Part shown: piece by piece, positions 3,335 to 49,305 of the stretch
Layout of the letters: each line of letters begins with the position of its first letter
Position numbering within the stretch: position 1 is the first letter of the stretch
Origin: Paramoeba atlantica
Lineage: Eukaryota > Protista > Discosea
Length of the DNA: 64,000 nucleotides
Direction of reading: 5' to 3'
Assembly: GCA_977017575.1 (NCBI GenBank)
Contig: CDRNVI010000037.1
Coordinates: 248,001 to 312,000 of the forward strand
Notes under the pieces: model-generated
Databases searched by the model: none
Seen by the model: only the letters and a program-made list of their open reading frames with translations
Told to the model about the DNA's origin: nothing
Position numbers and translations under genes: made by a program

Positions 3335-4226
3335 TTGCGGTGGTTGTAAAACTACCGCTCTACACTCGATTATTGAAAAAAAAGTGAACAAAAACAGTGA
3401 AAATATAAAGAAGAACACAGTAATATAATAGAAGAAAAAAATATAAAAGGGGGCTCCGGTGGTCCAAAACTGAAAAAATTTTTTGAAAAAAATGGGGGGT
3501 CCAGGGGGGGGGTCCAGGGGGGGGGGGCATGGTCGATCAAATTTTTTCGAAAAAATTAGTTTTCGAAAAAAAACCGCAGAAAGGGTAGCCGGGGTCTTGG
3601 CGCGCATTTTCCGCCCCCCTACCCGGGGGTGACCCCCCCGCGTATCCGCAGGACGGGTCCGCCAAGTTCGGATTTTTTCGGAAAAATTTTTTCGAAAAAA
3701 AATTCAACTTGGCGAAAAAAATGACAAAAAAAATATTTTTCCAAAATCGTTTCCCCTATTGTATTTTGATAGTTTGGGACCTACACTAGCTTTCTACGCA
3801 GTTGTTTTCGCAAGGTATCACTTCTTCGAACTGTGGTGCGCCCCTCAAATTGACCCATTTTTGACTAAAAAAGGTGAAAAAGTATTTTTCGGACCTAAAG
3901 GGGCATTTTTGTGTCGAAAGAATGGTATGGTTGGAGTCGTATTCTCTACCCAATACGTTCGGTAGGCTTTCATTCATGCCTGCGAGTGATTTCCCACGCG
4001 CAAATGTCGGATTTAGTGCTCTGAGAGCAAAAATATGCGAAAATCACCCCATTTTTACCCGAAAATCGGCTATTTTTGGCTATAATCTTTCCGTTTTCCA
4101 GGCTAAATTTTCTTTTTTAGGCTCTTCGTTAAACGCGGCGGTAGTTTTCAACGCGAAGCGCGCAGCATGAGTGACTTCTAAGTTGAAAGCAACCACCGCG
4201 TTTAACGAAGAGCCTAAAAAAGAAAA
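3335..4226 (+). mobile_element. Element A (non-coding, A|T-inserting, 3' fold-back hairpin), young copy
   Basis: 5' TTGCGGTGGTTGTAAAACTACCGC hairpin, GGGGGGTCCA repeats and a terminal ~110-nt hairpin; near-identical to the copies at 30335, 45377, 46202 and 52301. Confidence 0.9.
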
Positions 4227-4394
4227 TAATTTTATTGTGGTGGTTGTTTGTAACCTCTACCTCTCCCTTCTTTATGGTGTTCGGGGTAGGGTGGATCGAG
4301 GACGGTCAGAAAAGGGGGACCAACCCCCCCCCCCTCCCTATTCTCGATTCGGGCATAAATCACTGTGCTTAAAAACGTAGGTATCGGAACTCGA

Positions 4395-4467
4395 GCCCAG
4401 GTTGTCCAGTTGGTAAGACATGCCGTTTATAATCTGGTGGTCGCAGGTTCGACTCCCGGCGGTTACA
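4395..4467 (+). pseudogene. tRNA-like sequence (Ile-TAT-type loop) with unpaired acceptor stem; possible SINE head
   Basis: 73 nt; D-arm tgtc-cagttggtaa-gaca, anticodon loop tttataa, B-box ggttcgactcc. Acceptor and anticodon stems do not pair. Confidence 0.55.
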
Positions 4468-4819
4468 TTTTCAGCCATACGCGACGTCCGTTAGTGGGAA
4501 GATTTGCAAAGCCCCGTTCTTCGTATCTTGAAAAGTTAACTTTACTGTAGCTACTTAACATTCCCCCCGGAATGCTAAACCGGACTGTGGTTTACATCCT
4601 TCTGTATAAATTTGTATTCAACATACTCCTTCAGTAAATGAGAAAAGATCATCCGAGAATTGCTTTACTTAAAGTTCCATTATACTAATTTTACGATTCA
4701 TTCACTCAAATTCTGTGATCTTTTTATATTGCCAAATTTTAATTTTCTTACCGTACACGTTGCAATATTGTAACCTTGTCAATAACAGACTTGGCGGATC
4801 GCTTCAATATTTTAGTTAA

Positions 4820-6274
4820 ATGCATGTGGAAGGTATCAAATCTCTTCCTTCCCATACTTCTAGTGTGAAAGAGTCCTTGGAAGAACAAACTCTTGCAACT
4901 TCCTCCGCACGAGTCGAAGAGCTCGAATGTTTACATGCCCATGCTCGTCGTGGGCGGGAGCATGCCTTGGAACGTGATAGGGACACGGAAGGGCAGATTG
5001 ACGTTGCGGATCTACCGAAAGAAATGCCAAAGGCCAGCGCAGAGGTAATGTCTTCTCGGCGTATTCGTAAAGTTCGAATACCACAACGTAGTACACCACA
5101 GGAAGAGAAGTCTTCCGATACGTCATTGAACCCTTTTGCGTTGTCTGCAAAAGCTACACCTGTAGTCCCAACTATTCTCACTGAAACTACTAAACAGGGA
5201 ACTGATAAAGGGGAAGGAAACGAACATGGAACCACATCCAGTGCTTCTGGTGTGTCAGAAGAATCAGTCTCAGATATTACCAAGGATACTTCGACCAACG
5301 TAAAGCCGTTTGAACATATAGCGAAGAATGATTTTGAGAAGACTGTTTCCGATAGCACAAGTGAATCAGAAGAAAAATCAAACCCAAAGGACGTTTCAAA
5401 TCTTACCCCTTCACGATCTCACCCATTCCTCGGCTCCGCATTTGCAGCGCCCACACCGAATTTGGTAACAAACACGGTGCAAAAAAATGACACCAAACAG
5501 CAGACAAATTCGGTCGCTCCAAACGATCTCCTTGCGGCCTCACCATTTGCGCAAACCCCCTCACGAAAATTTGAAGATGCCGCAGCAGAGCTTGAAAAGC
5601 TACAAAGTCAAAGAAAAAATATTTTTTCGACACCATCAAGCGAGTCTGTGAGTCGCTTTCATGAAGATACTCCCAGTAAAGTACAATTCAGTACTGAAAC
5701 TTCGGAGATGATTCACAAAGATACAAATTTTTGTGAGGGTCATGACAGGGCTGAAAAGATTTGGTCTTCATGCGTTGTCCGCGTCTTTTTAGCTAGCGAT
5801 GACAAACAGTGGAACGAAATTGGGCGTGGGGAGTGTAAACTTTTGGTCACAACAAAAAATACGGAAGCCGACATCGCCGCACAAGAGAAGAGTGAGTCAG
5901 ATCTCCAAATGAGCGAGTCAGAGGACGCGTCAGAAAATGAAACACCGCGTTTTACAGATATCAAGGTAGATGATATCACAGAGGGTCGCGTCGTGTTGCA
6001 TGATGAAAAAACAAAGCAAGTTCGAGTCAACGCCGGTCTTGGCACTTCCTTTACATTGGGAGTCACATCCTTGACAAGCGGGGACAAATCTTCCTCTTCG
6101 ATGCTTTTCTCAACCATTGATTCAGAGTCTCAACGTTCTCGTAGTTACCTCTTACTCCCGCTTCGCAGCGTCTCTGTTCCTGCATCTGAACGAGCCTTGG
6201 CTCTGTCCTCTTTTCAAAGACGAGTAAGAGACCTACTCACACATTTGAAAAGTGTTTCACCTCATTCATCTTAG
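4820..6274 (+). CDS. Nup50/Nup2-like nucleoporin with C-terminal Ran-binding (RanBP1-type) domain
   Basis: KASAEVMSSRRIRKVR resembles the NUP50 N-terminal importin-alpha-binding motif. The middle has sparse Phe repeats (NPF, HPF, SPF). The C-terminus has KQWNEIGRGECKLL and GRVVLHDEKTKQVRVN RanBD-like motifs. Confidence 0.6.
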   Translation: MHVEGIKSLPSHTSSVKESLEEQTLATSSARVEELECLHAHARRGREHALERDRDTEGQIDVADLPKEMPKASAEVMSSRRIRKVRIPQRSTPQEEKSSDTSLNPFALSAKATPVVPTILTETTKQGTDKGEGNEHGTTSSASGVSEESVSDITKDTSTNVKPFEHIAKNDFEKTVSDSTSESEEKSNPKDVSNLTPSRSHPFLGSAFAAPTPNLVTNTVQKNDTKQQTNSVAPNDLLAASPFAQTPSRKFEDAAAELEKLQSQRKNIFSTPSSESVSRFHEDTPSKVQFSTETSEMIHKDTNFCEGHDRAEKIWSSCVVRVFLASDDKQWNEIGRGECKLLVTTKNTEADIAAQEKSESDLQMSESEDASENETPRFTDIKVDDITEGRVVLHDEKTKQVRVNAGLGTSFTLGVTSLTSGDKSSSSMLFSTIDSESQRSRSYLLLPLRSVSVPASERALALSSFQRRVRDLLTHLKSVSPHSS

Positions 6275-6591
6275 GAAACAAAGTAGATAAGAAGAAACTA
6301 TAATCGCCGCCACTTTGCGTAGAGTTTCAACTTCTATTTGTATTTTTATTTTTCATGCCTCCAACTAGCTGAACCTACCTTTGAACTTTGCCAAAGAAGA
6401 GGCTTGGATTGCTATTGAGTACGTTAGTGAACTCTTGTGGGCGAAATATCTTTTATTATAATCACAATACATACTTTGAGTAGAAAGATTTATCGCACCA
6501 GTTATGCAATGCACATTACAATATTTTTCTTTGATGTGACGGAACGATTTAAATTGTGTTGGGCAATTTATTTTTGAAACAGAAATGACCA

Positions 6592-8106
6592 TTGTTTTGT
6601 ACAGTTTTTATCGAATTCCTATCCCTATGCATCATAGATCGCTCTGACGTTTCTTCCCCATTGCAGCGTTTCTTGCCACAACTACGGCACTCACGCACCT
6701 CGTGTCCCCTAATGTTCCGTCCTAACGCGTCTATGTTTTTAATCGCCCCACCTCTTGACCCTCCCTCTTATCGAAGTCGCGTCTTTTTCCGAAAGCGCTT
6801 TTTACATTTTCCTGGTTTTGGGCCCATCACACGGCACAAAAATTCCTATCTACATTTTCCGGCACAAAGAATCCCCTCAACCCGAACATCTTTTTTTATG
6901 CCCAATGACCGTTTATTTTCTATCCCTCACCGTACCTTCCTCCGTCACGTACTCTCCTTACAAAGAACTCCTAAACCCACCTCTTTCACGCATCGATCAT
7001 CACTTTCCCAAACAGCCCCTCTGCCCTCTTCCACAATTTCATCCAGCCCCCTGCCACGACGAAAAAATAGAAACCACCCCCACTTATCCTCGACCGCTTT
7101 TCCCATAGCCGCACCTCCTCAACCTACCCCGATCTCCTCTGTATCGACAACAACAAAAAGCTCATCTCTCCCTACTACCCCTAAACCCCCAACCTCCTCT
7201 CTCTCACCCACAGCCACATCTCAATCCCCAACCGCCCCTCTCACTACCCCTACAACCACAACTACCCGTAAAACTACCCCTAAAGTCACCACAACACCTA
7301 CAACCCCAGCCACCGCCACAACTACCCCTGCAGCCACAACAACAACCCACGCCACAACCCCAACCCAACCCACAGCCACAGCCACAGCCTCCCCCTCCCT
7401 TCCCTCCCCCCACCACTACTGGGTGACCCACGAACACCTCGACTTCGCCTTTGAGTGTCGCACCCCCTCCTCCTGGACCACACGTGTCACGCTCTCGGAG
7501 AACTTCCTCTACCTCCGTGCCATCCCCCCCACCCATCCCTCCCCCTACAACCCCTCCACAGTTAACTCTTCTTCTTTGTCTTCTTCTATATCCTCTTCTT
7601 TATCCTCTTCATTATCATCTTCATTATCTTCTTTATCATCATCTTCTCTATCCTCTTCTTTATCTTCTTCTTCTTCTTCTTCTTTCTCTCCCCTCTTTAG
7701 GAACCCCTCCCCCTCCCCATACTACCAATCCATGGTCGAGGGGCTTAGCATCAACGCCTTTGCCTACCCTCGTAAAATGCCCTGGGGGGATGCCTCCATT
7801 TTAATGGAGCGCTTCCTGGGGGCGTTTGCCCCGCTCCAAGCGGAGTACGCCGTGGTGGAGGGCCCGGAGCGCATGGACCCCGCGATGTCGGGGGTGGTGC
7901 GGGCCGGGATCGAGTTTGTCCCCGCAGGGGGGGGTGGGGGGGAGAGAGCCCGTGGGGTGGTCACCACGTGTTTTCACCCCAATAAGAGGTTTCACTATGT
8001 GGTGGTGGCGGCGGTGAGGAAGGAGGTGTGGGTGGCGCAACGGCACGGGACGGAGGTGCTGTTGGAGGAGCTGGTGAGGGGGTTGGCGTGTTTAACGGCG
8101 GCATAG
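6592..8106 (+). CDS. Hypothetical protein: Thr/Pro/Ser low-complexity region plus C-terminal globular domain (possibly PsbP/Mog1-like); start uncertain (6592, 6712 or 6898)
   Basis: 504-aa ORF. FAFECRTPSSW and the terminal HYVVVAAVRKEVW...LLEELVRGL recall the PsbP/Mog1 pattern only by eye. Confidence 0.7.
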   Translation: MFCTVFIEFLSLCIIDRSDVSSPLQRFLPQLRHSRTSCPLMFRPNASMFLIAPPLDPPSYRSRVFFRKRFLHFPGFGPITRHKNSYLHFPAQRIPSTRTSFFMPNDRLFSIPHRTFLRHVLSLQRTPKPTSFTHRSSLSQTAPLPSSTISSSPLPRRKNRNHPHLSSTAFPIAAPPQPTPISSVSTTTKSSSLPTTPKPPTSSLSPTATSQSPTAPLTTPTTTTTRKTTPKVTTTPTTPATATTTPAATTTTHATTPTQPTATATASPSLPSPHHYWVTHEHLDFAFECRTPSSWTTRVTLSENFLYLRAIPPTHPSPYNPSTVNSSSLSSSISSSLSSSLSSSLSSLSSSSLSSSLSSSSSSSFSPLFRNPSPSPYYQSMVEGLSINAFAYPRKMPWGDASILMERFLGAFAPLQAEYAVVEGPERMDPAMSGVVRAGIEFVPAGGGGGERARGVVTTCFHPNKRFHYVVVAAVRKEVWVAQRHGTEVLLEELVRGLACLTAA

Positions 8107-25996: not shown

Positions 25997-26830
25997 ATGA
26001 TATTTTTCTTAGATGCTGCGGATAGTGTACCTAAAGCGGCTCGGGTGCGTGGAGCATCCCTCCCGCAAGAATATGAGCTCTGTCGTGTCTTGCATAACAT
26101 TTCAAATCAGCATCGCTCATGGACTACAGAGACTCCCGCATGTAACTGGAAAGGTGTAACATGCGAGTCTGCAAAGATGCAAGTCATTAAAATCAGGTGG
26201 GAGAATATGGGGCTTGAGGGAACACTATCGTGGAGGTATATTCCAATGAGTGTACAAGTCTTGACTCTGGGTTGTTTCTTTAATTTAACACCGAATGTAA
26301 TCACAGGCTCGCTCCCTGTTTTTGAGTTGCCCTCACGGCTAACAAAATTCGTGGTGGACGGCAACAAGATGACGGGGAATATTGACTTGGAACATCTTCC
26401 TGCAGAGTTGATTTCTTTTGAAATAGCGGAAAATCGCTTTGATGGAACTGTATCTCTATCATCTCTACCTCGTCATCTGGTTTTGTTAGATCTTCAACAT
26501 AATCTGTTCTCTGGGGAACTTGATCTAACAAGATTATCTCCAAACTTGGAAACACTGAATTTGGCTGATAATATGTTTAGTGGTAACTTGGCTCTTAAGA
26601 ATCTGTCAAAATCACTCGTACGACTTGAGCTAGACAATAACAAACTAAGTGGAGAATTGGAGTTGCATTTTCTTCCACCTCAAATGAGGTGCCTTGTACT
26701 TAAGAATAATGCGTTTGAGGGACACCTTGACCTCCGAAATCTGTCAGAACATTTTACTATACTGGATCTTCGGGGTAATAACATCACCTCCGTTGTGCCA
26801 ACTCCTTTTCCACATTTTTTTAGAAAGTGA
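25997..26830 (+). CDS. LRR family copy 4 (paralogue of 1656-2609)
   Basis: The first ~100 coding nt are nearly identical to copy 1, and the LRR array is collinear. Confidence 0.9.
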   Translation: MIFFLDAADSVPKAARVRGASLPQEYELCRVLHNISNQHRSWTTETPACNWKGVTCESAKMQVIKIRWENMGLEGTLSWRYIPMSVQVLTLGCFFNLTPNVITGSLPVFELPSRLTKFVVDGNKMTGNIDLEHLPAELISFEIAENRFDGTVSLSSLPRHLVLLDLQHNLFSGELDLTRLSPNLETLNLADNMFSGNLALKNLSKSLVRLELDNNKLSGELELHFLPPQMRCLVLKNNAFEGHLDLRNLSEHFTILDLRGNNITSVVPTPFPHFFRK

Positions 26831-30054: not shown

Positions 30055-31289
30055 CAGGGGGGACATTTGTCTGTGTAATACTAATCTGGAGAACATTAAT
30101 CTGTGTGCTATTAATCTGTGTTAATTCGAAAATATTTGGCCGGACGGAAATCTGTGTTAAAAAAACAAAAATGCGCCGCAGGCGAAATTTTTCTTATTTT
30201 AGTACATTTTTACGTCTTTTTCTCTGAAATTTTCCTTTTTCTTTGCAAAACTGGACAATTTTTTGAAAAAATATCATAGCTCCGGCATACCGAGGGGACA
30301 TTTATCTGTGTAACATTAATCTGTGTAACATTAACTTTTTTAGGCTCTTCGTTAAACGCGGTGGTTGTTTTCAACTTAGAAGTCACTCATGCTGCGCGCT
30401 TCGCGTTGAAAATTACCGCTGCGTTTAACGAAGAGCCTAAAAAAGAAAATTTAGCCTGGAAAACGGAAAGATTATAGCCAAAAATAGCCGAATTTCGGGT
30501 AAAAATGGGGTGATTTTCGCGTATTTTTGCTCTCAGAGCACTAAATCCGACATTTGCGCGTGGGAAATCACTCGTAGTCATGAATGGAAGCCTACCGAAC
30601 GTATTGGATAGAGAATGCGACTCCAACCATACCATTCTTTCGGCACAAAAATGCCCCTTTAGGTCCGAAAAATACTTTTTCACCTTTTTCAGTCAAAAAT
30701 GGGTCATTTTGAGGGCCGTACCACGGTTTGAAGAAGTGATACCTTGCGAAAACAACTGCGTAGAAAGCTAGTGTAGGTCCCAAACTATCAAAATACAATA
30801 GGGGAAACGATTTTGGAAAAATATTTTTTGTGCCATTTTTTTCGCCAAGTTGAATTTTTTTTCAAAACATTTTTTCCGAAAAAATCCGAACTTGGCGGAC
30901 CCGTCCTGCGGATACGCGGGGGGGTCACCTCCGGGTAGGGGGGTGGAAAATGCGCGCCAAGACCCCGGCTACCCTTTCTGCGTTTTTTTTTCGAAAACTA
31001 ATTTTTTCGAAAAAATTTGCTCGACCATGACCCCCCCCCCTGGACCCCCCCCATGGACCCCCCCCATGGACCCCCATTTTTTTCAATTTTGTTTTTCAGT
31101 TTTGGACCACCGGAGCCCCCTTTTATATTTTTTTCTTCTATTATATTACTGTGTTCCTCTTTATATTTTCACTGTTTTTGTTCACTGTTTTTTCAATAAT
31201 CGAGGGTAGAGCGGTAGTTTTACAACCACCGCAATCTGTGTTAATTTTACGAATTAACACAGATTAATGTTAGACAAATGTCCCCCCTG
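30055..31289. mobile_element. MITE family C (TIR caggggggacatttgtct; attaatctgtg iterons) hosting an element A insertion
   Basis: Inverted ends at 30055 and 31289; repeated aatctgtgt motif. Confidence 0.75.
30335..31234 (-). mobile_element. Element A copy
   Basis: Inverse of 3335-4226; removing it restores the host iteron cattaa|tctgtg. Confidence 0.9.
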
Positions 31290-33717: not shown

Positions 33718-34080
33718 ATGGCACACAACCATGCCAATCTGCCGACCAACCTTCATCTATACCAACCCCCTTCATCTATCTCCCCACCTAACCACGGTAA
33801 CCTTCCGTTACCCCATTCCGGTAACCAACCCCGTTCTCTTCTATCCCCAGTGTACGCGGTATTGCATTACGAATATCATTATATTCTCCTGCATATCAAG
33901 GGTCATATTCTGAATATTTATGACAGTTTTTTTGAACATGCCTCAGTAACAGGTCGGGCTAACGTCAAAATTTTCCGAGACAGACTTAGAAATACGCTCA
34001 AAGGATCCTTAATTGATGTATTTTGCCAAATACCCTCAGCAAATGCCTGGCGAAAATACGTGCGGACTGCACGTAATTAA
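33718..34080 (+). pseudogene. Truncated Ulp1-like peptidase fragment
   Basis: HYILLHIKGHILNIYDSF resembles the His/Asp segment of C48 peptidases; no Gln/Cys motif before the stop. Confidence 0.35.
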
Positions 34081-34514
34081 TATCTTATGTTGTTCTCTAT
34101 TTGGTGTCGAAAAAGAGTATTTTAACAGATCAACACTATGCGATGATTGGTCTCCACACCTTAACTAGACAATAATTTTTATCAAATTCATAAAATTTAC
34201 CACTCCTGATGTGAGTGCGTAATAGGGAAGCATGGTCGGGACCTCCTCGTGGTCTTCCCTGGCACTGCTATCGTAGCGATAGTACAGACGCCGACCTTCA
34301 TTAGACAAAAATAGAGAAAAAAAACATAGACAAAAAAGGAACCGGTCATATTGAAATTTTATGAAAAAATGTTGACTCCCCCACTTAAGAGTCCAAACGC
34401 CCAAAATCGGCGGACTCTTAAGTAGGGAGGGACAGCAATATTTGTGCTTTATTTTGACAGGAGGAGTATCTAAATTTACCTATTTCTCCCACCTATCTAC
34501 TTTTCTACCAACAC

Positions 34515-43227: not shown

Positions 43228-44184
43228 ATGTCACCTCTTCCCCTTCCATTCCACCTCCGTACCCTTACCTCCAGTACTATCACAACCCCCCTTGCGTCGT
43301 TTTTTCACCCCTTCTCACTTCCTTACCCAATCCCCTTCTCTCCTCTCGGCTTCCCCTCTCCCCGATCCGATATCATAATCCCCGCCCCATGGTCCTTCCC
43401 GAGTCGTCTCCCTTCCCGTTCTCCCCCAACCCCCACAATCACAACAACCCCTCTACTTCCTCCCCACTCGACCTCCATGCTCTCACGACCACAACACCCA
43501 ACTCATCTACACCCCCACACCCCCTCCCCTTCCCCCTCCCCCACCCCCACCCCCCTCTACACCACCAGTCCCTACTTTCAAAAATCCTTTTTCTCTTTTT
43601 TATTTCTCTCCACACTCTCCTTCATGGTTTGGCTACGTAACCAATCCATTGCCTCCTGCTCTGTAGGAGACCCCAACGAGACCCTTCCCAACGGGTCACC
43701 TTTACAAAACAACAGTTGTTGTAATCCCCACAACTCGTGTAACGGATCACCACGCCTTAAGTATTGTGACACCCCCGAGGAGGTCGAATCCGTGATCCGC
43801 TCACGTGACCCGAGGCGACCCCCTTGGCCGGTGCTTCACCACAGGGCCACACAGATGCGTGAGGGGAAGCTCCCTCTCACGGGGGTGCAGGAGCTGTGGG
43901 AGGCCACCGCCTACTACTACCCCGCGGACTGGCTGATTCCGCTGGAGTTGGCCCAGGTGTTAAAGTACACCACGGGGCGGTACCTGAAACGAGTGGTACG
44001 GGACCCCGAGGGGTTCCGACGGGAGCTGATGGTCCAGCTGATTCAAATCAAGCATGGACGGGTGAGAGGGGTGGACCGGGTGAGTGGGGAGTTGTGGGAG
44101 ATTTTGAGTGGAGCGATTGAGGAGTTAAGTCGGATGGATTTTCGGGATATGGAGGAGATACCGATTGCACCGACCCATCGGTAG
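43228..44184 (+). CDS. Hypothetical protein with one TM segment and a C-terminal helical domain
   Basis: 318-aa ORF. YYPADWLIPLELAQVL recalls the C-terminal extension of long-form bacterial phenylalanine hydroxylases (by eye only). Confidence 0.75.
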   Translation: MSPLPLPFHLRTLTSSTITTPLASFFHPFSLPYPIPFSPLGFPSPRSDIIIPAPWSFPSRLPSRSPPTPTITTTPLLPPHSTSMLSRPQHPTHLHPHTPSPSPSPTPTPLYTTSPYFQKSFFSFLFLSTLSFMVWLRNQSIASCSVGDPNETLPNGSPLQNNSCCNPHNSCNGSPRLKYCDTPEEVESVIRSRDPRRPPWPVLHHRATQMREGKLPLTGVQELWEATAYYYPADWLIPLELAQVLKYTTGRYLKRVVRDPEGFRRELMVQLIQIKHGRVRGVDRVSGELWEILSGAIEELSRMDFRDMEEIPIAPTHR

Positions 44185-45376
44185 ATGTAGGGGAGGGGGC
44201 GAAGAGGGTTGCGATGGAAGAGAAAGGGGAGGAGGGGGGTAGAGAACAGAACCTGTAGATTAGAATGGGTTCAATTTTTGAGAAGAATACGTTTCTTGTG
44301 AAATGTTGAGTATGTTTATGGCACACCGTTTTGAGGTGTTACTACACACCTCAGGGTTAAAATGCATTACAAACTACTGTAAGCATGATGTCTTGGGTAC
44401 AAAAATATCTAACTCATCCGTATTCTGGGAACGCTTTTTGATAGGTGCGGCAAGGTTTTTTAGGTAAAGTCCCCCTCATTTTCTCAGACCCCTCCCGTAC
44501 GATATAAACCATGTTCCAGGATAGTATACCCATGCCCACTTAAACCACATACCCGTTTAACATACCTATACCTTGGATAACATACCGGGGGGGTATGTTA
44601 TTCTGGTCTGCGACAGTTAACATACAACCCCCTCGTCCCACGTCTTTTTTTGTGCAACGGTACAAAACTCCAACCGTAATATCACGTACTTTTTTAACAA
44701 AATGTTTCTTTTATACGTTTTTAGATGTATTTTGATACGTTTTAGCATTTAGTACTACACGCGGTTAGTACTACACCCCCCCCTTTAATATGCACCCCCT
44801 TCCCTCCCCCCCCTTAATATGCACAAATTCCATGTTGAATTTTCGGAACGTTTTTTTGAGAGCAGATGTTTTGCCTATTTTTACCCAATTTCTTCAAAGG
44901 GCTTTGTGCTTTTAAGCCTCTGATGCGCATCTATGTATGTGGAGATAATATATATTTGTATACTTGTTCCTCTCTTTCTCCCGTACTTTTCACCCTTATG
45001 TCAGATACTGACGGAGTTCCGACCACAGTTCACTCTGTGCGTGGACCTCTGACCACTTGGCTTCGGAAGCTCCCTCCCCAACCGCAAGTAGGGGAGCGCA
45101 CATCCCTTATTATTAACAACACCCCGACGGTAACAGTTCAGGAAAAACGGCAGCGTACTGAACTTACTATATTCGAGAAACGAGAAATTTGTATGCAAAG
45201 AATCGAGAAAGCTCTACCATTTACACTGAAATGACACGTCTAACTTATTCTCTGAGCGGGATTTACATCGATGTAATTCGTTCTGGGTGGGTTACTGACG
45301 ATGTCTATGAGCGAATGTTAAAGAAATATTTACCCTATACTCTTGACAACCCCTCGACGGTTATTATCACGGACGA

Positions 45377-47266
45377 TTTCTTTTTTAGGCTCTTCGTTAA
45401 ACGCGGTGGTTGCTTTCAACTTAGAAGTCACTCATGCTGCGCGCTTCGCGTTGAAAACTACCGCCGCGTTTAGCGAAGAGCCTAAAAAAGAAAATTTAGC
45501 CTGGAAAACGGAAAGATTATAGCCAAAAATAGCCGAATTTCGGGTAAAAATGGGGTCATTTTCGCATATTTTTGCTCTCAGAGCACTAAATCCGACATTT
45601 GCGCGTGGGAAATCACTCGTAGGTATGAATGGAAGCCTACCGAACGTATTGGGTGGAGAATGCGACTCCAACCATACCATTCTTTCGACACAAAAATGCC
45701 CCTTTAGGTCCGAAAAATACTTTTTCACCTTTTTTAGTCAAAAATGGGTCATTTTGGGGGGCGCACCACGGTTAGAAGAAGGGATACCTTGCGAAAGCAA
45801 CTGCGTAGAAAGCTAGTGTAGGTCCCAAACTATCAAAATACAATAGGGGAAACGATTTTGGAAAAATATTTTTTTTGTCATTTTTTTCGCCAAGTTGAAT
45901 TTTTTTTCAAAAAATTTTCTCCGAAAAAATCCGAACTTGGCGGACCCGTCCTGCGGATACGCGGGGGGGTTACCCCCGGGTAGGGGGGTGGAAAATGCGC
46001 GCCAAGACCCCGGCTACCCTTTCTGCAGTTTTTTTTCGAAAACTAATTTTTTCGAAAAAATTTGATCGACCATGCCCCCCCCCCCCTGGACCCCCCCCCC
46101 TGGACCCCCCCCCTGGACCCCCCCCCTGGACCCCCCCCATGGACCCCCCATTTTTTTCAAATTTTTTTTTCAGTTTTGGACCACCGGAGCCCCCTTTTAT
46201 AAGTCTTTCCGTTTTCCAGGCTAAAGTTTCTTTTTTAGGCTCTTCGTTAAACGCGGTGGTTGCTTTCAACTTAGAAGTCACTCATGCTGCGCGCTTCGCG
46301 TTGAAAACTACCGCCGCGTTTAAGGAAGAGCCTAAAAAAGAAACTTTAGCCTGGAAAACGGAAAGACTATAGCCAAAAATAGCCGAATTTCGGGTACAAA
46401 TGGGGTCATTTTCGCATATTTTTGCTCTCAGAGCACTAAATCCGACATTTGCGCGTGGGAAATCATTCGCAGGCATGAATGAAAGCCTACCGAACGTATT
46501 GGGTAGAGAATGCGACTCCAACCATACCATTCTTTCGACACAAAAATGCCCCTTTAGGTCCGAAAAATACTTTTTCACCTTTTTTAGTCAAAAATGGGTC
46601 ATTTTGGGGGGCGCACCACAGTTCGAAGAAGTGATACCTTGCGAAAACAACTGCGGAGAAAGCTAGTGTAGGTCCCAAACTATCAAAATACAATAGGGGA
46701 AACCATTTTGGAAAAATAATTTTTTTTGTCATTTTTTTCGCCAAGTTGAATTTTTTTTCAAAAATTTTTTTCCGAAAAAATCCGAACTTGGCGGACCCGT
46801 CCTGCGGATACGCGGGGGGGTCACCCCCGGGTAGGGGGGTGGAAAATGCGCGCCAAGACCCCGGCTACCCTTTCTGCAGTTTTTTTTCGAAAACTAATTT
46901 TTTCGAAAAAATTTGATCGACCATGCCCCCCCCCCCCTGGACCCCCCCCCTGGACCCCCCCCCCTGGACCCCCCCCATGGACCCCCCCCATGGACCCCCC
47001 ATTTTTTTCAAATTTTTTTTTCAGTTTTGGACCACCGGAGCCCCCTTTTATATTTTTTTCTTCTATTATATTACTGTGTTCCTCTTTATATTTTCACTGT
47101 TTTTGTTCACTTTTTTTTCAATAATCGAGTGTAGAGCGGTAGTTTTACAACCACCGCAATTTTTTTCTTCTATTATATTACTGTGTTCCTCTTTATATTT
47201 TCACTGTTTTTGTTCACTTTTTTTTCAATAATCGAGTGTAGAGCGGTAGTTTTACAACCACCGCAA
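45377..47266 (-). mobile_element. Element A copy, itself interrupted by a second copy at 46202-47159
   Basis: Outer copy = 45377-46201 plus 47160-47266; both insertions excise precisely at A|T. Confidence 0.9.
46202..47159 (-). mobile_element. Element A copy nested in element A, with 29-nt fold-back
   Basis: Removal restores ccccttttata|tttttttc exactly (7 T, as in the intact copy at 47041). Confidence 0.9.
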
Positions 47267-48447
47267 TTATACCGCTCATAGAACGAATAATGTACCAACG
47301 AATTGTGATCCACAGACGATACCCGGAGGGTGTACGAAAGCCACACAATTCCATGATCGCGTTTTTAATCGCTTATTCAAGCGTCAATATAATGAGCTTC
47401 TTAGCGCGTGGCGACTTCGAAATAGCGTCCAGAAGGTTACTCGTGCGCTTGTTTTGCAATGGATTAAGGATGCACATGCACATGTATGGGCAAAAAACCA
47501 AAGCACTTTATTAAAAGTAGCACAAACTTACATTTTGCGACCTGCGACTGAGTACCCTTGGATTGAGTCAAGCGTTACAGTTGGCTCAAAAACTACTCTT
47601 GGAATATGTCCTGAACATGCCGTCTCACCCTCCTCAATTTCAAAAGGAGAAAAACTCACACAAGAATCCATTGTGGTAGAAGATAGTGCGGGCAACACGT
47701 CCCACTATGACAAAGAGTGGAAACGATTCCGCGGTCGAAAGCGATTTCTTACGACGCATGCTGTTGATACATTATGCGAAAATGTATTGCAGGCATACCG
47801 TCTAGCCCCTTCCGCAGACAAAAAGAATAGTTTGTTTTGAACACAGGAAAGACTCGATTACTTTTAGGTTTTCAGCGCAAACTGTTCAGTCAAATTTTCC
47901 CCGACTCACGAATTATTGCGGTGCTCTTTTTTAACAACCATTTTTTTTTCGTGGAACTCCGAAAGCATCTGTTGACAATATTTGATAGTTACGAGGATTA
48001 TTCTCCGATTTCTCGTCAAGATTTTCTTCAGTGCTTTCTAAAATTATTCTGTCCTCTTCTTGGTCACTCAATAGAGGATGTTCGTCTTCGACATGCTCCA
48101 GTCATGCAGCAGGAGCCTACGCTAAATGAATGTGGAATACATGTAGTGAACAATTTATGTTCATTCCTGTTCTATCCTGCCACATTCAGTAGGGTGAATA
48201 ATGTTTTGACCCGAAAGAATCTTTCTAAGTCATGGTGGCCGTGCGGACCAGGAATTCCATCACTTCCTGAAAAACAAAGTACTGACGAAGAAACCGTCGG
48301 AGCGCTCCGTGACTCAGATTCCGATTGTGAGTATACAATCAATTTGATAAAAGATGTGCAGTTTGAAGATGCGACCGCGGATGGATGGGAGCTGTCCGAA
48401 AATTAATGACGGAGATGCAAATTCCTATCCAAAATAAGTTTATGTGC

Positions 48448-49305
48448 GCGCTATTATACTCAAATTTTACACTGATATTTTTGCTTGACTTCTGCTTGAC
48501 TTTAAGAAAATCTTCTCGAGTTCGTGGGGCTCTACTGCCGCAGGAATACGATCTTTCTCGAGCCCTGCGCAACGTTCCTAATCTTCGAACCACGTGGACC
48601 ACAGACAATTCTGCATGTAAGTGGATGGGGGTAAAATGTGATGCTGACCTACAGGTTATAGAAATCAAGTGGAGTTATATGGGCCTTGAGGGTACGGTTT
48701 CATGGCGAGATTTTCCTCGAACACTTCGAGTTCTTATCATGGGACAATCTGCAGCATGGTACAGGAATAGGCTCACAGGATCTCTATCGAGTCCTGATTT
48801 ACCACCGTTACTCGCAATGTTTAACATCGAATTCAACAATTTTAGCGGCGAAATAGCCCTAGAATATCTGCCAGCTAACCTTCTATCATTTGAAGTCGCA
48901 CAAAATTCCTTTGAAGGCACAGCATCAATTCATGCACTTCCTTTGACACTAATTAAGCTGGATCTTGATAAGAACCTTTTCTCAGGGCGGTTAAATTTAA
49001 TGAATTTGCCTTCAAAATTCGAACGTCTTCTCATGTCGAACAATATGTTCAGTGGGAGTATCGTTCTGACGCATCTACCAAACACGATATTGTACGTTGA
49101 TTTGTCAGACAACAATCTAAGCGGAGAAATTGATTTGTCCTCTCTCCCACCAGTACTCACTGATTTATCTTTACGTAACAATAACTTCTTCGGACACATA
49201 GACCTCTCTAATACGCCGGATTCTCTGTTACGGGTAGATCTTCTTGGTAACAACATTACTTCTGTGACACCATACCCATTCCCCGACATTTTGCTTCTTC
49301 GCTAA
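48448..49305 (+). CDS. LRR family copy 7
   Basis: RVRGALLPQEYDL, WTTDNSACKWMGVKC, about 8 LRRs; ATG chosen inside track ORF 48385-49305. Confidence 0.9.
   Translation, partial: ALLYSNFTLIFLLDFCLTLRKSSRVRGALLPQEYDLSRALRNVPNLRTTWTTDNSACKWMGVKCDADLQVIEIKWSYMGLEGTVSWRDFPRTLRVLIMGQSAAWYRNRLTGSLSSPDLPPLLAMFNIEFNNFSGEIALEYLPANLLSFEVAQNSFEGTASIHALPLTLIKLDLDKNLFSGRLNLMNLPSKFERLLMSNNMFSGSIVLTHLPNTILYVDLSDNNLSGEIDLSSLPPVLTDLSLRNNNFFGHIDLSNTPDSLLRVDLLGNNITSVTPYPFPDILLLR

Follow-up and report, generated by a model that had tools for sequence, protein, structure and literature searches.

The window analysed here is a 64-kb stretch of DNA (contig CDRNVI010000037.1 of assembly GCA_977017575.1, deposited as Paramoeba atlantica) in which positions 44769-48406 hold what is in all likelihood (probability ca. 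0.88) a dead remnant from a family of pogo-like (DDE_1) cut-and-paste transposons that insert at TA and carry a Ulp1/SENP-like cysteine protease behind the transposase. The relic sits between a MIX gene (upstream open reading frame (ORF) 43228-44181; Pfam PF18529, E 2e-41) and a leucine-rich repeat (LRR) gene (ORF 48385-49305), all on the same strand. The genome is kinetoplastid-type, as judged from the MIX ORF and from a related European Nucleotide Archive (ENA) assembly, ERZ24900291, which has repeats in common with the window at 87-94% identity, contains at least six further copies of the family and in which REH2, a kinetoplastid RNA-editing helicase, adjoins one of these copies. Translation of the three forward frames yields four coding pieces: P1 (44998-45234, frame 1), P2 (45189-45377, frame 3, last residues ...VIITDD), P3 (47268-47837, frame 3, which opens with YTAH...IPGGCTKATQFHD and reaches FLTTHAVDTLCENV...NSLF before a stop) and P4 (47837-48403, frame 2, with NNHFFFV, IFDS, QQEP and ECGIHV). 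An earlier note on the same DNA, made from the letters alone, had given coordinates that imply a transposase start at 44998, where the ATG of P1 lies, and had interpreted the sequence as a pogo transposase apparently fused to a protease, interrupted by an element A and by one frameshift.

Because the window pieces stay below Pfam thresholds, the argument was made through relatives. An exhaustive phmmer search with P4 over 1.84 billion representative proteins returned 14 of them, including P0010, an intact ORF of 784 aa on a Logan contig which P4 matches at residues 601-733. P0010 is collinear with P1, P2, P3 and P4, scores 23.8 bits as a whole protein and 26.7 bits for residues 236-480 with the DDE_1 profile (gathering score 22), and runs without any change of frame from FLPSHCVDVLCTNV through CNHFVLVD, VLDS, EQAP and NDCGVCVVNN. 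The residues proposed for catalysis are D250, D371 and D403 in the transposase and H624, D639, Q681 and C688 in the protease. Parts of both domains are also found in a single ORF in two internally deleted remnants, one of 317 aa (P0003) that joins the N-terminus to the protease C-terminus, the other of 455 aa (P0017) that contains the N-terminal portion up to and including the second Asp, joined directly to the protease segment with the Gln and Cys. Further searches added little: with the whole of P0010 the query alone was returned, with its DDE region only P0017 was gained, P3 yielded nothing beyond fragments of ORFs from two other copies, and the window ORFs had no exact match in the protein collection.

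The two domains thus occur in one ORF in an intact relative, and between TA-flanked terminal inverted repeats (TIRs) in the genomic copies L003 and L002 described below, which supports the fusion, in-frame, of a pogo-type DDE transposase to a Ulp1/SENP-like cysteine protease as the earlier note had proposed. The same data bear on the view that two separate genes or elements became adjacent by chance or by nesting, the fusion being an artefact of reading through frameshifts. Such a view would agree with the location of the parts in different frames in the window, L003, L005 and L008 and with their splitting by gene callers into separate ORFs. It is nonetheless very improbable: two adjacent genes are ruled out by P0010, P0003 and P0017, one TIR pair encloses both parts, and the site of the frameshift varies per copy and lies, in the window, inside the protease domain and not between the domains.

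The fusion is interrupted in the window by an insert of 1,890 bp, a multiple of 3, the removal of which joins ...VIITDD (to 45377) with YTAH...IPGGCTKATQFHD (from 47268) in frame 3. That this restores one frame, as stated in the earlier note, is confirmed by blastn, since window 45195-45377 and 47268-48302 align with 5105-5287 and 5288-6325 of L003, where they are contiguous, by P0010, which reads LLFDQCTAH across the insertion point, and by contigs of three public runs (X1-X3; same organism label, ca. 1% diverged) in which 47266 follows immediately on 45375, an ATT being common to the two sides. The insert is foreign and not part of the pogo element; element A measures ca. 930 bp, is here partly tandem-duplicated, and has other window copies at 53199-52300, 4225-3334 and 30335-31235. 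The exact empty site, with the 3-nt ATT on both sides of the insert, indicates that the insertion is polymorphic between strains or haplotypes and that element A was recently active. The spacing of 30 residues between the last two Asp that had been counted across the junction was found again when counting from the first D of 'DD'; it is also 30 in L003, and 31 in P0010.

The single frameshift, previously placed at ~47837 ahead of a complete His-Asp-Gln-Cys set, is likewise present: frame 3 is closed by a TGA at 47838-47840, while frame 2, open from 47829 onwards, contains all four residues. Frameshift positions differ from copy to copy and, with other copies shifted elsewhere and L003, P0007 (the ORF of L005) and P0010 reading through, that of the window is best taken as a private mutation, neither a programmed shift nor a gene boundary. 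The contigs of X1-X3 carry indels within 47266-47983, a span that includes the frameshift site. Programmed ribosomal frameshifting, which would set the ratio of transposase alone to transposase-protease fusion, might have been suspected from the occurrence, in four genomic copies, of a frame change at most ca. 50 codons before the His motif of the protease. The variable positions and the three relatives that keep one frame through the window's site rule it out for practical purposes; in addition, no canonical slippery heptamer occurs at 47829-47840 and the same copies carry additional frameshifts elsewhere.

The hallmarks of a transposon are best seen in L003, an element of 3,081 bp (3966-7046) with 26-nt TIRs, 18-nt subterminal motifs repeated at both ends, TA flanks and four frameshifts. 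L002 is a 1.7-kb deletion derivative (5786-7512) having perfect 27-nt TIRs and TA flanks, and contains the ORF of P0003, while L010 (4001-5368) holds that of P0017. L005 is decayed and collinear, L004 has kept the protease end alone, and L008 represents a second subfamily, in which DDE_1 scores 40 bits (E 3.8e-10) and the protease part comes immediately after the matched region. The perfect 27-nt TIRs of L002, together with the open ORFs in the deletion derivatives L002 and L010, hint at fairly recent non-autonomous mobility. RVT_1 genes were also observed within a few kb of three copies (L003 9517-12159, L005 7013-8101 and L004 3645-4886). In L003 and L005 the reverse-transcriptase gene is downstream, and since that of L003 lies outside the TIRs, this proximity probably reflects repeat clustering rather than a chimeric element.

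These features leave scarcely any room for the possibility that the locus is a domesticated host gene and not the remnant of a transposon. A host gene would agree with the place of the locus in a polycistronic array, in sense orientation between the MIX and LRR genes, and with the intact single ORF of P0010 on a contig having no detectable TIRs; the window copy, however, is without the first Asp, interrupted and frameshifted, and its relatives form many strongly diverged copies with TIR boundaries and TA flanks, deletion derivatives among them. The features of the transposon relic in the window are listed in Table 1.

Table 1. Features of the relic along the window, in order of position.
Feature	Position	Strand, frame	Evidence
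Left end: TA, then TIR-like terminus (CTACACCCCCCCCCTTTAATATGCAC)	44769..44796	+	Alignable with both termini of L003 (complete copy) and L002 (CTGTGACCCCCCCCTTTAATAT...)
Two subterminal copies of an 18-19-nt motif (CCCCCCTTTAATATGCAC)	44777..44824	+	Same motif repeated at both ends of L003
N-terminal coding segment, from ATG to helix-turn-helix-like stretch (…EKRQRTELTIFEKREIC)	44998..45192	+, frame 1	Collinear with N-termini of L003, P0003 and P0010
Breakpoint of internal deletion, frame 1 to frame 3	45193..45194	+	blastn: 45143-45192 = L003 4383-4432; 45195-45377 = L003 5105-5287
Middle DDE segment, to second catalytic Asp (45372-45374)	45195..45377	+, frame 3	70.8% aa identity to L003; aligns with P0010 312-371
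Foreign insert, element A	45378..47267	+	Empty site in three runs; other copies in the window
C-terminal DDE part with third Asp (47355-47357), then variable linker	47268..47744	+	IPGGCT..Q.HDR invariant across copies (alignments A3, A4)
First protease helix (FLTTHAVDTLCENV...)	47745..47837	+, frame 3	Equivalent residues of P0010 are helix 20-35 of a confident model (pLDDT ~90)
Frameshift (3 to 2) private to this copy, within a short run of T in the protease domain	47829..47840	+	L003, P0007 and P0010 keep one frame there
C48-like protease core: His 47939-41, Asp 47984-86, Gln 48110-12, Cys 48131-33	47837..48241	+, frame 2	Family profile, fold, weak Pfam C48 match
Acidic C-terminal tail and stop codon	48242..48406	+	Tail conserved in P0001, P0002 and P0003

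Four defects were identified in the window copy, namely a 672-bp deletion that removed the first Asp, the 1.9-kb insertion, the frameshift in the protease domain and a missing 3' end, right TIR included. The deleted 672 bp correspond to L003 4433-5104 and encode, in L003, a second DNA-binding region and the first catalytic Asp, which is present (FGDET) in L003, L008, P0010 and P0017. As for the 3' end, the right TIR has no match anywhere in the window, and the 3' untranslated part together with this TIR (ca. 600 bp in L003) is absent. The LRR ORF begins ca. 40 nt past the stop codon of the relic, from which it follows that the 3' end has been lost and that the relic now forms the upstream flank of the LRR gene. 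This LRR gene has paralogues in the window (48515-48716 vs 1813-2014 and 26040-26244). At the left end, the first 6 nt of the terminus deviate, and in front of them stands a second copy of the final 12 nt (TTAGTACTACAC) of a neighbouring 225-bp repeat (44541-44765 vs 2744-2967, 91.6% identity). This repeat stops precisely where the relic begins, and the second copy of its 12 nt, at 44765-44776, overlaps the atypical terminus, which suggests a rearranged junction. The subterminal motif has two matches in the whole window vs 0 expected by chance, and this pair likely represents binding sites for the DNA-binding domain of the transposase.

As it stands, the window copy cannot encode an active enzyme nor be mobilised. 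Being dead, it cannot be the autonomous partner of any miniature inverted-repeat transposable element (MITE), and the partnership suggested in the earlier note with MITEs ending in CCGT/CA is not supported: the family termini read CTGTGACCCCCCCC..., and neither these nor the subterminal motif occur anywhere else in the window. A TA-flanked stretch of ca. 100 bp at 19982-20084 displays inverted C-rich termini (CTGTACCCCCCCC / CTGACCCCCCCCC) that resemble the start of the family TIR, with internal repeats that differ; it may be a small MITE, but the case is too weak to be counted. Another side observation concerns a second C48-like remnant in the window (33796-34162, + strand), which extends from the His motif to the C-terminal motif, is split by a frameshift and is closest to the L008/P0008 subfamily; no DDE part was found upstream and it adjoins reverse transcriptase-like ORF fragments on the opposite strand. 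The window locus itself is an inert relic, the value of which is to point to the family.

Assignment to pogo (Pfam DDE_1, PF03184) was based on profile matches, on a DDD triad with the last two Asp spaced within the pogo range (ca. 29-59) and on short TIRs with a TA target-site duplication. DDE_1 matches above the gathering score were obtained for P0010 and L008, the triad and spacing for P0010, and short TIRs with TA for L003 and L002, while the membership of the window fragments derives from their collinear alignment to the P0010 and L008 proteins. As a lead only, 87 of the 100 ESM Atlas clusters nearest to P3 carry DDE_1. The family resembles the pogo superfamily (Tigger, Fot1, pogoR and others; Gao et al. 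2020, PMC7386202) in the DDE_1 core, the DDD triad, the 30-31 residues between the last two Asp, GW...DN..H-like and IPGG.T..Q..D motifs, a putative N-terminal helix-turn-helix (HTH)-like region, short TIRs and TA flanks. It differs from this superfamily, part of the IS630-Tc1-mariner group, by its C-terminal C48-like protease domain, by N-terminal DNA-binding domains that are too diverged for Pfam thresholds and by its kinetoplastid host.

The protease identity of the C-terminal part was first visible as a weak Pfam match of the window piece to Peptidase_C48 (PF02902; 12.7 bits, E 0.11), which covers profile positions 101-198, the segment to be expected, and stays below the gathering score of 20.7 bits. 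More distant relatives lie above this score (29.3 bits for P0012 and 31.6 bits for P0014). When a profile of 14 family sequences was compared with all Protein Data Bank (PDB) sequences, yeast Ulp1 was the best match (E 1.6e-5), followed by SENP1, SENP5, Ulp2, ChlaDub1 and SENP8, and the His, Asp, Gln-Gln and Asp-Cys-Gly motifs of the family align on the catalytic motifs of Ulp1. H624, D639, Q681 and C688 of P0010 correspond in order and spacing to H514, D531, Q574 and C580 of Ulp1. Conserved motifs are HF(V/F)L, (F/Y/L)DS and QQ.P..N(D/E)CG.H; in alignment A5 the Gln and Cys are invariant, the His and Asp are present wherever the segment is, and all four residues are kept in every subfamily.

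Structure predictions agree with this profile match. In an AlphaFold2 model built for residues 575-770 of P0010 the core is predicted with confidence, and all 50 of the 50 Foldseek matches listed are CE-clan proteases; VIA-align gave Z ~9 to SENP7 and Ulp1, with adenain and poxvirus I7 among the fold matches. Starting the model at residue 545, which adds the FLTTHAVDTLCENV-type helix (pLDDT 82.8, pTM 0.80), raises the TM-score to SENP/Ulp1 proteins, to 0.57-0.64 over ca. 185 columns for SENP2, SENP5, Ulp2 and Ulp1 (E 6e-7 for SENP2); CE-clan proteases again make up all 50 of the Foldseek matches listed for this longer model. The FLTTHAVDTLCENV stretch, which the earlier note had attached to the preceding frame, is accordingly the first helix of the domain in the P0010 model. 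Fold neighbours in the ESM Atlas are all Peptidase_C48 clusters, several of them in plant hAT or CACTA-type transposon proteins. The domain is thus predicted to adopt a compact but complete C48-like fold of clan CE and, being below the PF02902 gathering score yet matched by Ulp1 through the PDB profile, was filed as C48-like, clan CE. With yeast Ulp1 and human SENP1, 2, 5, 7 and SENP8/NEDP1 (MEROPS C48, clan CE) it has in common the order and spacing of His-Asp-Gln-Cys and the fold (at the TM-scores given), and it differs from them by being shorter (ca. 185 residues), only 12-17% identical and, in this subfamily, below the Pfam gathering score. The C-terminal part, whose failure to match C48 profiles or structure had been named as a refuting outcome, is CE-clan/C48-like by the family profile and by the modelled fold.

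Comparison between copies gave, for the protease part, synonymous differences (pS) of 0.71-0.91, which are saturated, and non-synonymous differences (pN) of 0.26-0.37; for the DDE part, pN was 0.17-0.24. Saturation at synonymous but not at non-synonymous sites indicates that, for most of the divergence, purifying selection acted on both domains in lineages that were active; the copies became defective afterwards, each independently.

Several observations weigh against the interpretation given so far or restrict it. On the window pieces alone, Pfam detected no DDE_1 at E<=1 and no threshold was reached, so that the profile check advocated in the earlier note failed for these pieces (C48 included, at the 12.7 bits given above) and succeeded for DDE_1 in P0010 and L008. 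The C-terminus of P0010 also remains below the C48 gathering score (15.1 vs 20.7 bits). P0010 is the sole intact full-length ORF found and occurs on a 2.66-kb contig without TIRs; copies with both domains exist as TIR-bounded elements in L003 and L002 (ERZ24900291) and, separately, as one intact ORF. Scans of JGI (Joint Genome Institute) metagenomes, with the DDE motifs and with the protease motifs, returned no relatives. The N-terminal DNA-binding domain is weakly recognised, L003 giving sub-threshold matches to HTH_28 (E 0.006), HTH_23 (E 0.01) and CENP-B_N (E 0.2), and the assignment to pogo is one by DDE_1 profile, triad and TIR/TA. Finally, with regard to function, the evidence fits SUMO, NEDD8, ubiquitin or self-processing alike.

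The single protein of the family comprises, in this order, a putative N-terminal HTH region, the DDD core, a variable linker, the C-terminal Ulp1/SENP-like cysteine protease and an acidic tail. This order, the catalytic residues, the TIR/TA architecture and the selection on both domains are supported by the data above, and a mechanism can be proposed by analogy. Following the pogo/Tc1-mariner paradigm, the HTH region would bind the repeated subterminal 18-nt motifs near both ends, and the DDD core would excise the element and insert it at TA. The protease, as in the C48 family, would cleave after the C-terminal Gly-Gly of SUMO or of a related modifier, its targets being either host chromatin or repair factors or the transposase itself, with an effect that may favour transposition. 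The removal of SUMO-dependent silencing suggested in the earlier note is hypothetical.

Isopeptidase action of this kind, in trans or on the transposase, is somewhat favoured among the possible functions, perhaps accounting for a little over half of what can be expected, because isopeptidases for SUMO and NEDD8 give the best matches and no Gly-Gly occurs in the inter-domain linker. A Gly-Gly motif (NRGG, KGGD/RGGD) was however noticed in the N-terminal region of all subfamilies (P0010 ~125-135, L003 ~4560-4640, L008 ~3560-3600 and P0017 ~128-140); it could be a cleavage site for an Ulp-type protease or a basic nucleic-acid-binding stretch, and its recurrence keeps self-processing as a rival. 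More generally, the C-terminal domain might not act as an enzyme on host targets, serving instead either as a tether that binds SUMO or ubiquitin-like modifiers on modified chromatin and so directs target choice, or as a self-processing protease. The CE clan does include viral polyprotein proteases such as the adenain and poxvirus I7 found among the fold matches, and purifying selection is compatible with any of these roles. Such alternatives are nevertheless rather unlikely, since a purely binding role is at odds with the retention of all four catalytic residues in every subfamily, self-processing with the lack of Gly-Gly between DDE and protease, and both with SUMO and NEDD8 isopeptidases being the closest structural matches. 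Isopeptidase action remains the preferred function.

The combination of domains was compared with known systems. Two large surveys of pogo elements mention no protease (PMC7386202, PMC7325037), and a 2021 paper presented Merlin as the first DNA transposon to be reported from kinetoplastids (PMC8101967). Ulp1 domains have been documented on Ginger1 and Mutator-like (KI-MULE) transposases, and a role in transposition was hypothesised (PMC2836005). These, like the plant hAT and CACTA-type clusters of the ESM Atlas, resemble the present family in having a C48/Ulp1 domain C-terminal to or beside a DDE transposase but differ in transposase superfamily (integrase-like, MULE, hAT and CACTA) and in target-site duplications, and the Ulp1 fusions across these superfamilies are probably independent acquisitions.

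In the ESM Atlas, P0010 lies closest to a cluster of 'Ubiquitin-like protease family profile domain-containing protein' (score 0.91, 186/256 shared features), with proteins of ca. 1,151 aa and 64 members, mostly from Basidiomycota, of which 69% carry DDE_1 and 53% Peptidase_C48. The same two Pfam families occur there in one protein; the cluster is fungal and ca. 370 residues longer, and the comparison is one of language-model features alone. The fungal and the present fusion may be shared by descent or have arisen independently. As the searches of the literature found no paper describing this cluster, and full-text searches found none on a pogo/DDE_1 and Ulp1/C48 fusion, for pogo or kinetoplastids, the supposition in the earlier note that such a fusion had not been described holds for the literature searched, whereas the architecture itself, even if undescribed, is already in public protein sets through the Basidiomycota cluster.

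Ulp1-type domains on Mutator-like, Ginger1, hAT, CACTA-type and Zisupton transposases have been known for about twenty years, and in no case, to our knowledge, has their function been established. The data presented here support the occurrence in a kinetoplastid, on an enzyme of the pogo type, of this kind of fusion that other groups of transposons are known to have. Since Tc1/mariner/pogo enzymes generally need no host-specific factors, a compact single-ORF pogo-protease element would be a simple and direct test system. The well-studied parasitic kinetoplastids carry, as far as we know, retroelements only, and the family adds to a new picture in which free-living kinetoplastids carry diverse DNA transposons. 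It is conceivable, though doubtful, that several unrelated DNA-transposon superfamilies here each gained a Ulp1-like protease and that the pogo-C48 family is perhaps still mobile, the latter being suggested by the perfect 27-nt TIRs and open ORFs of the deletion derivatives. If such repeated gains are true, the removal of SUMO or a similar modifier would be a general strategy of transposons to license transposition or to escape chromatin-based repression in a host that all but lacks gene-specific transcriptional control.

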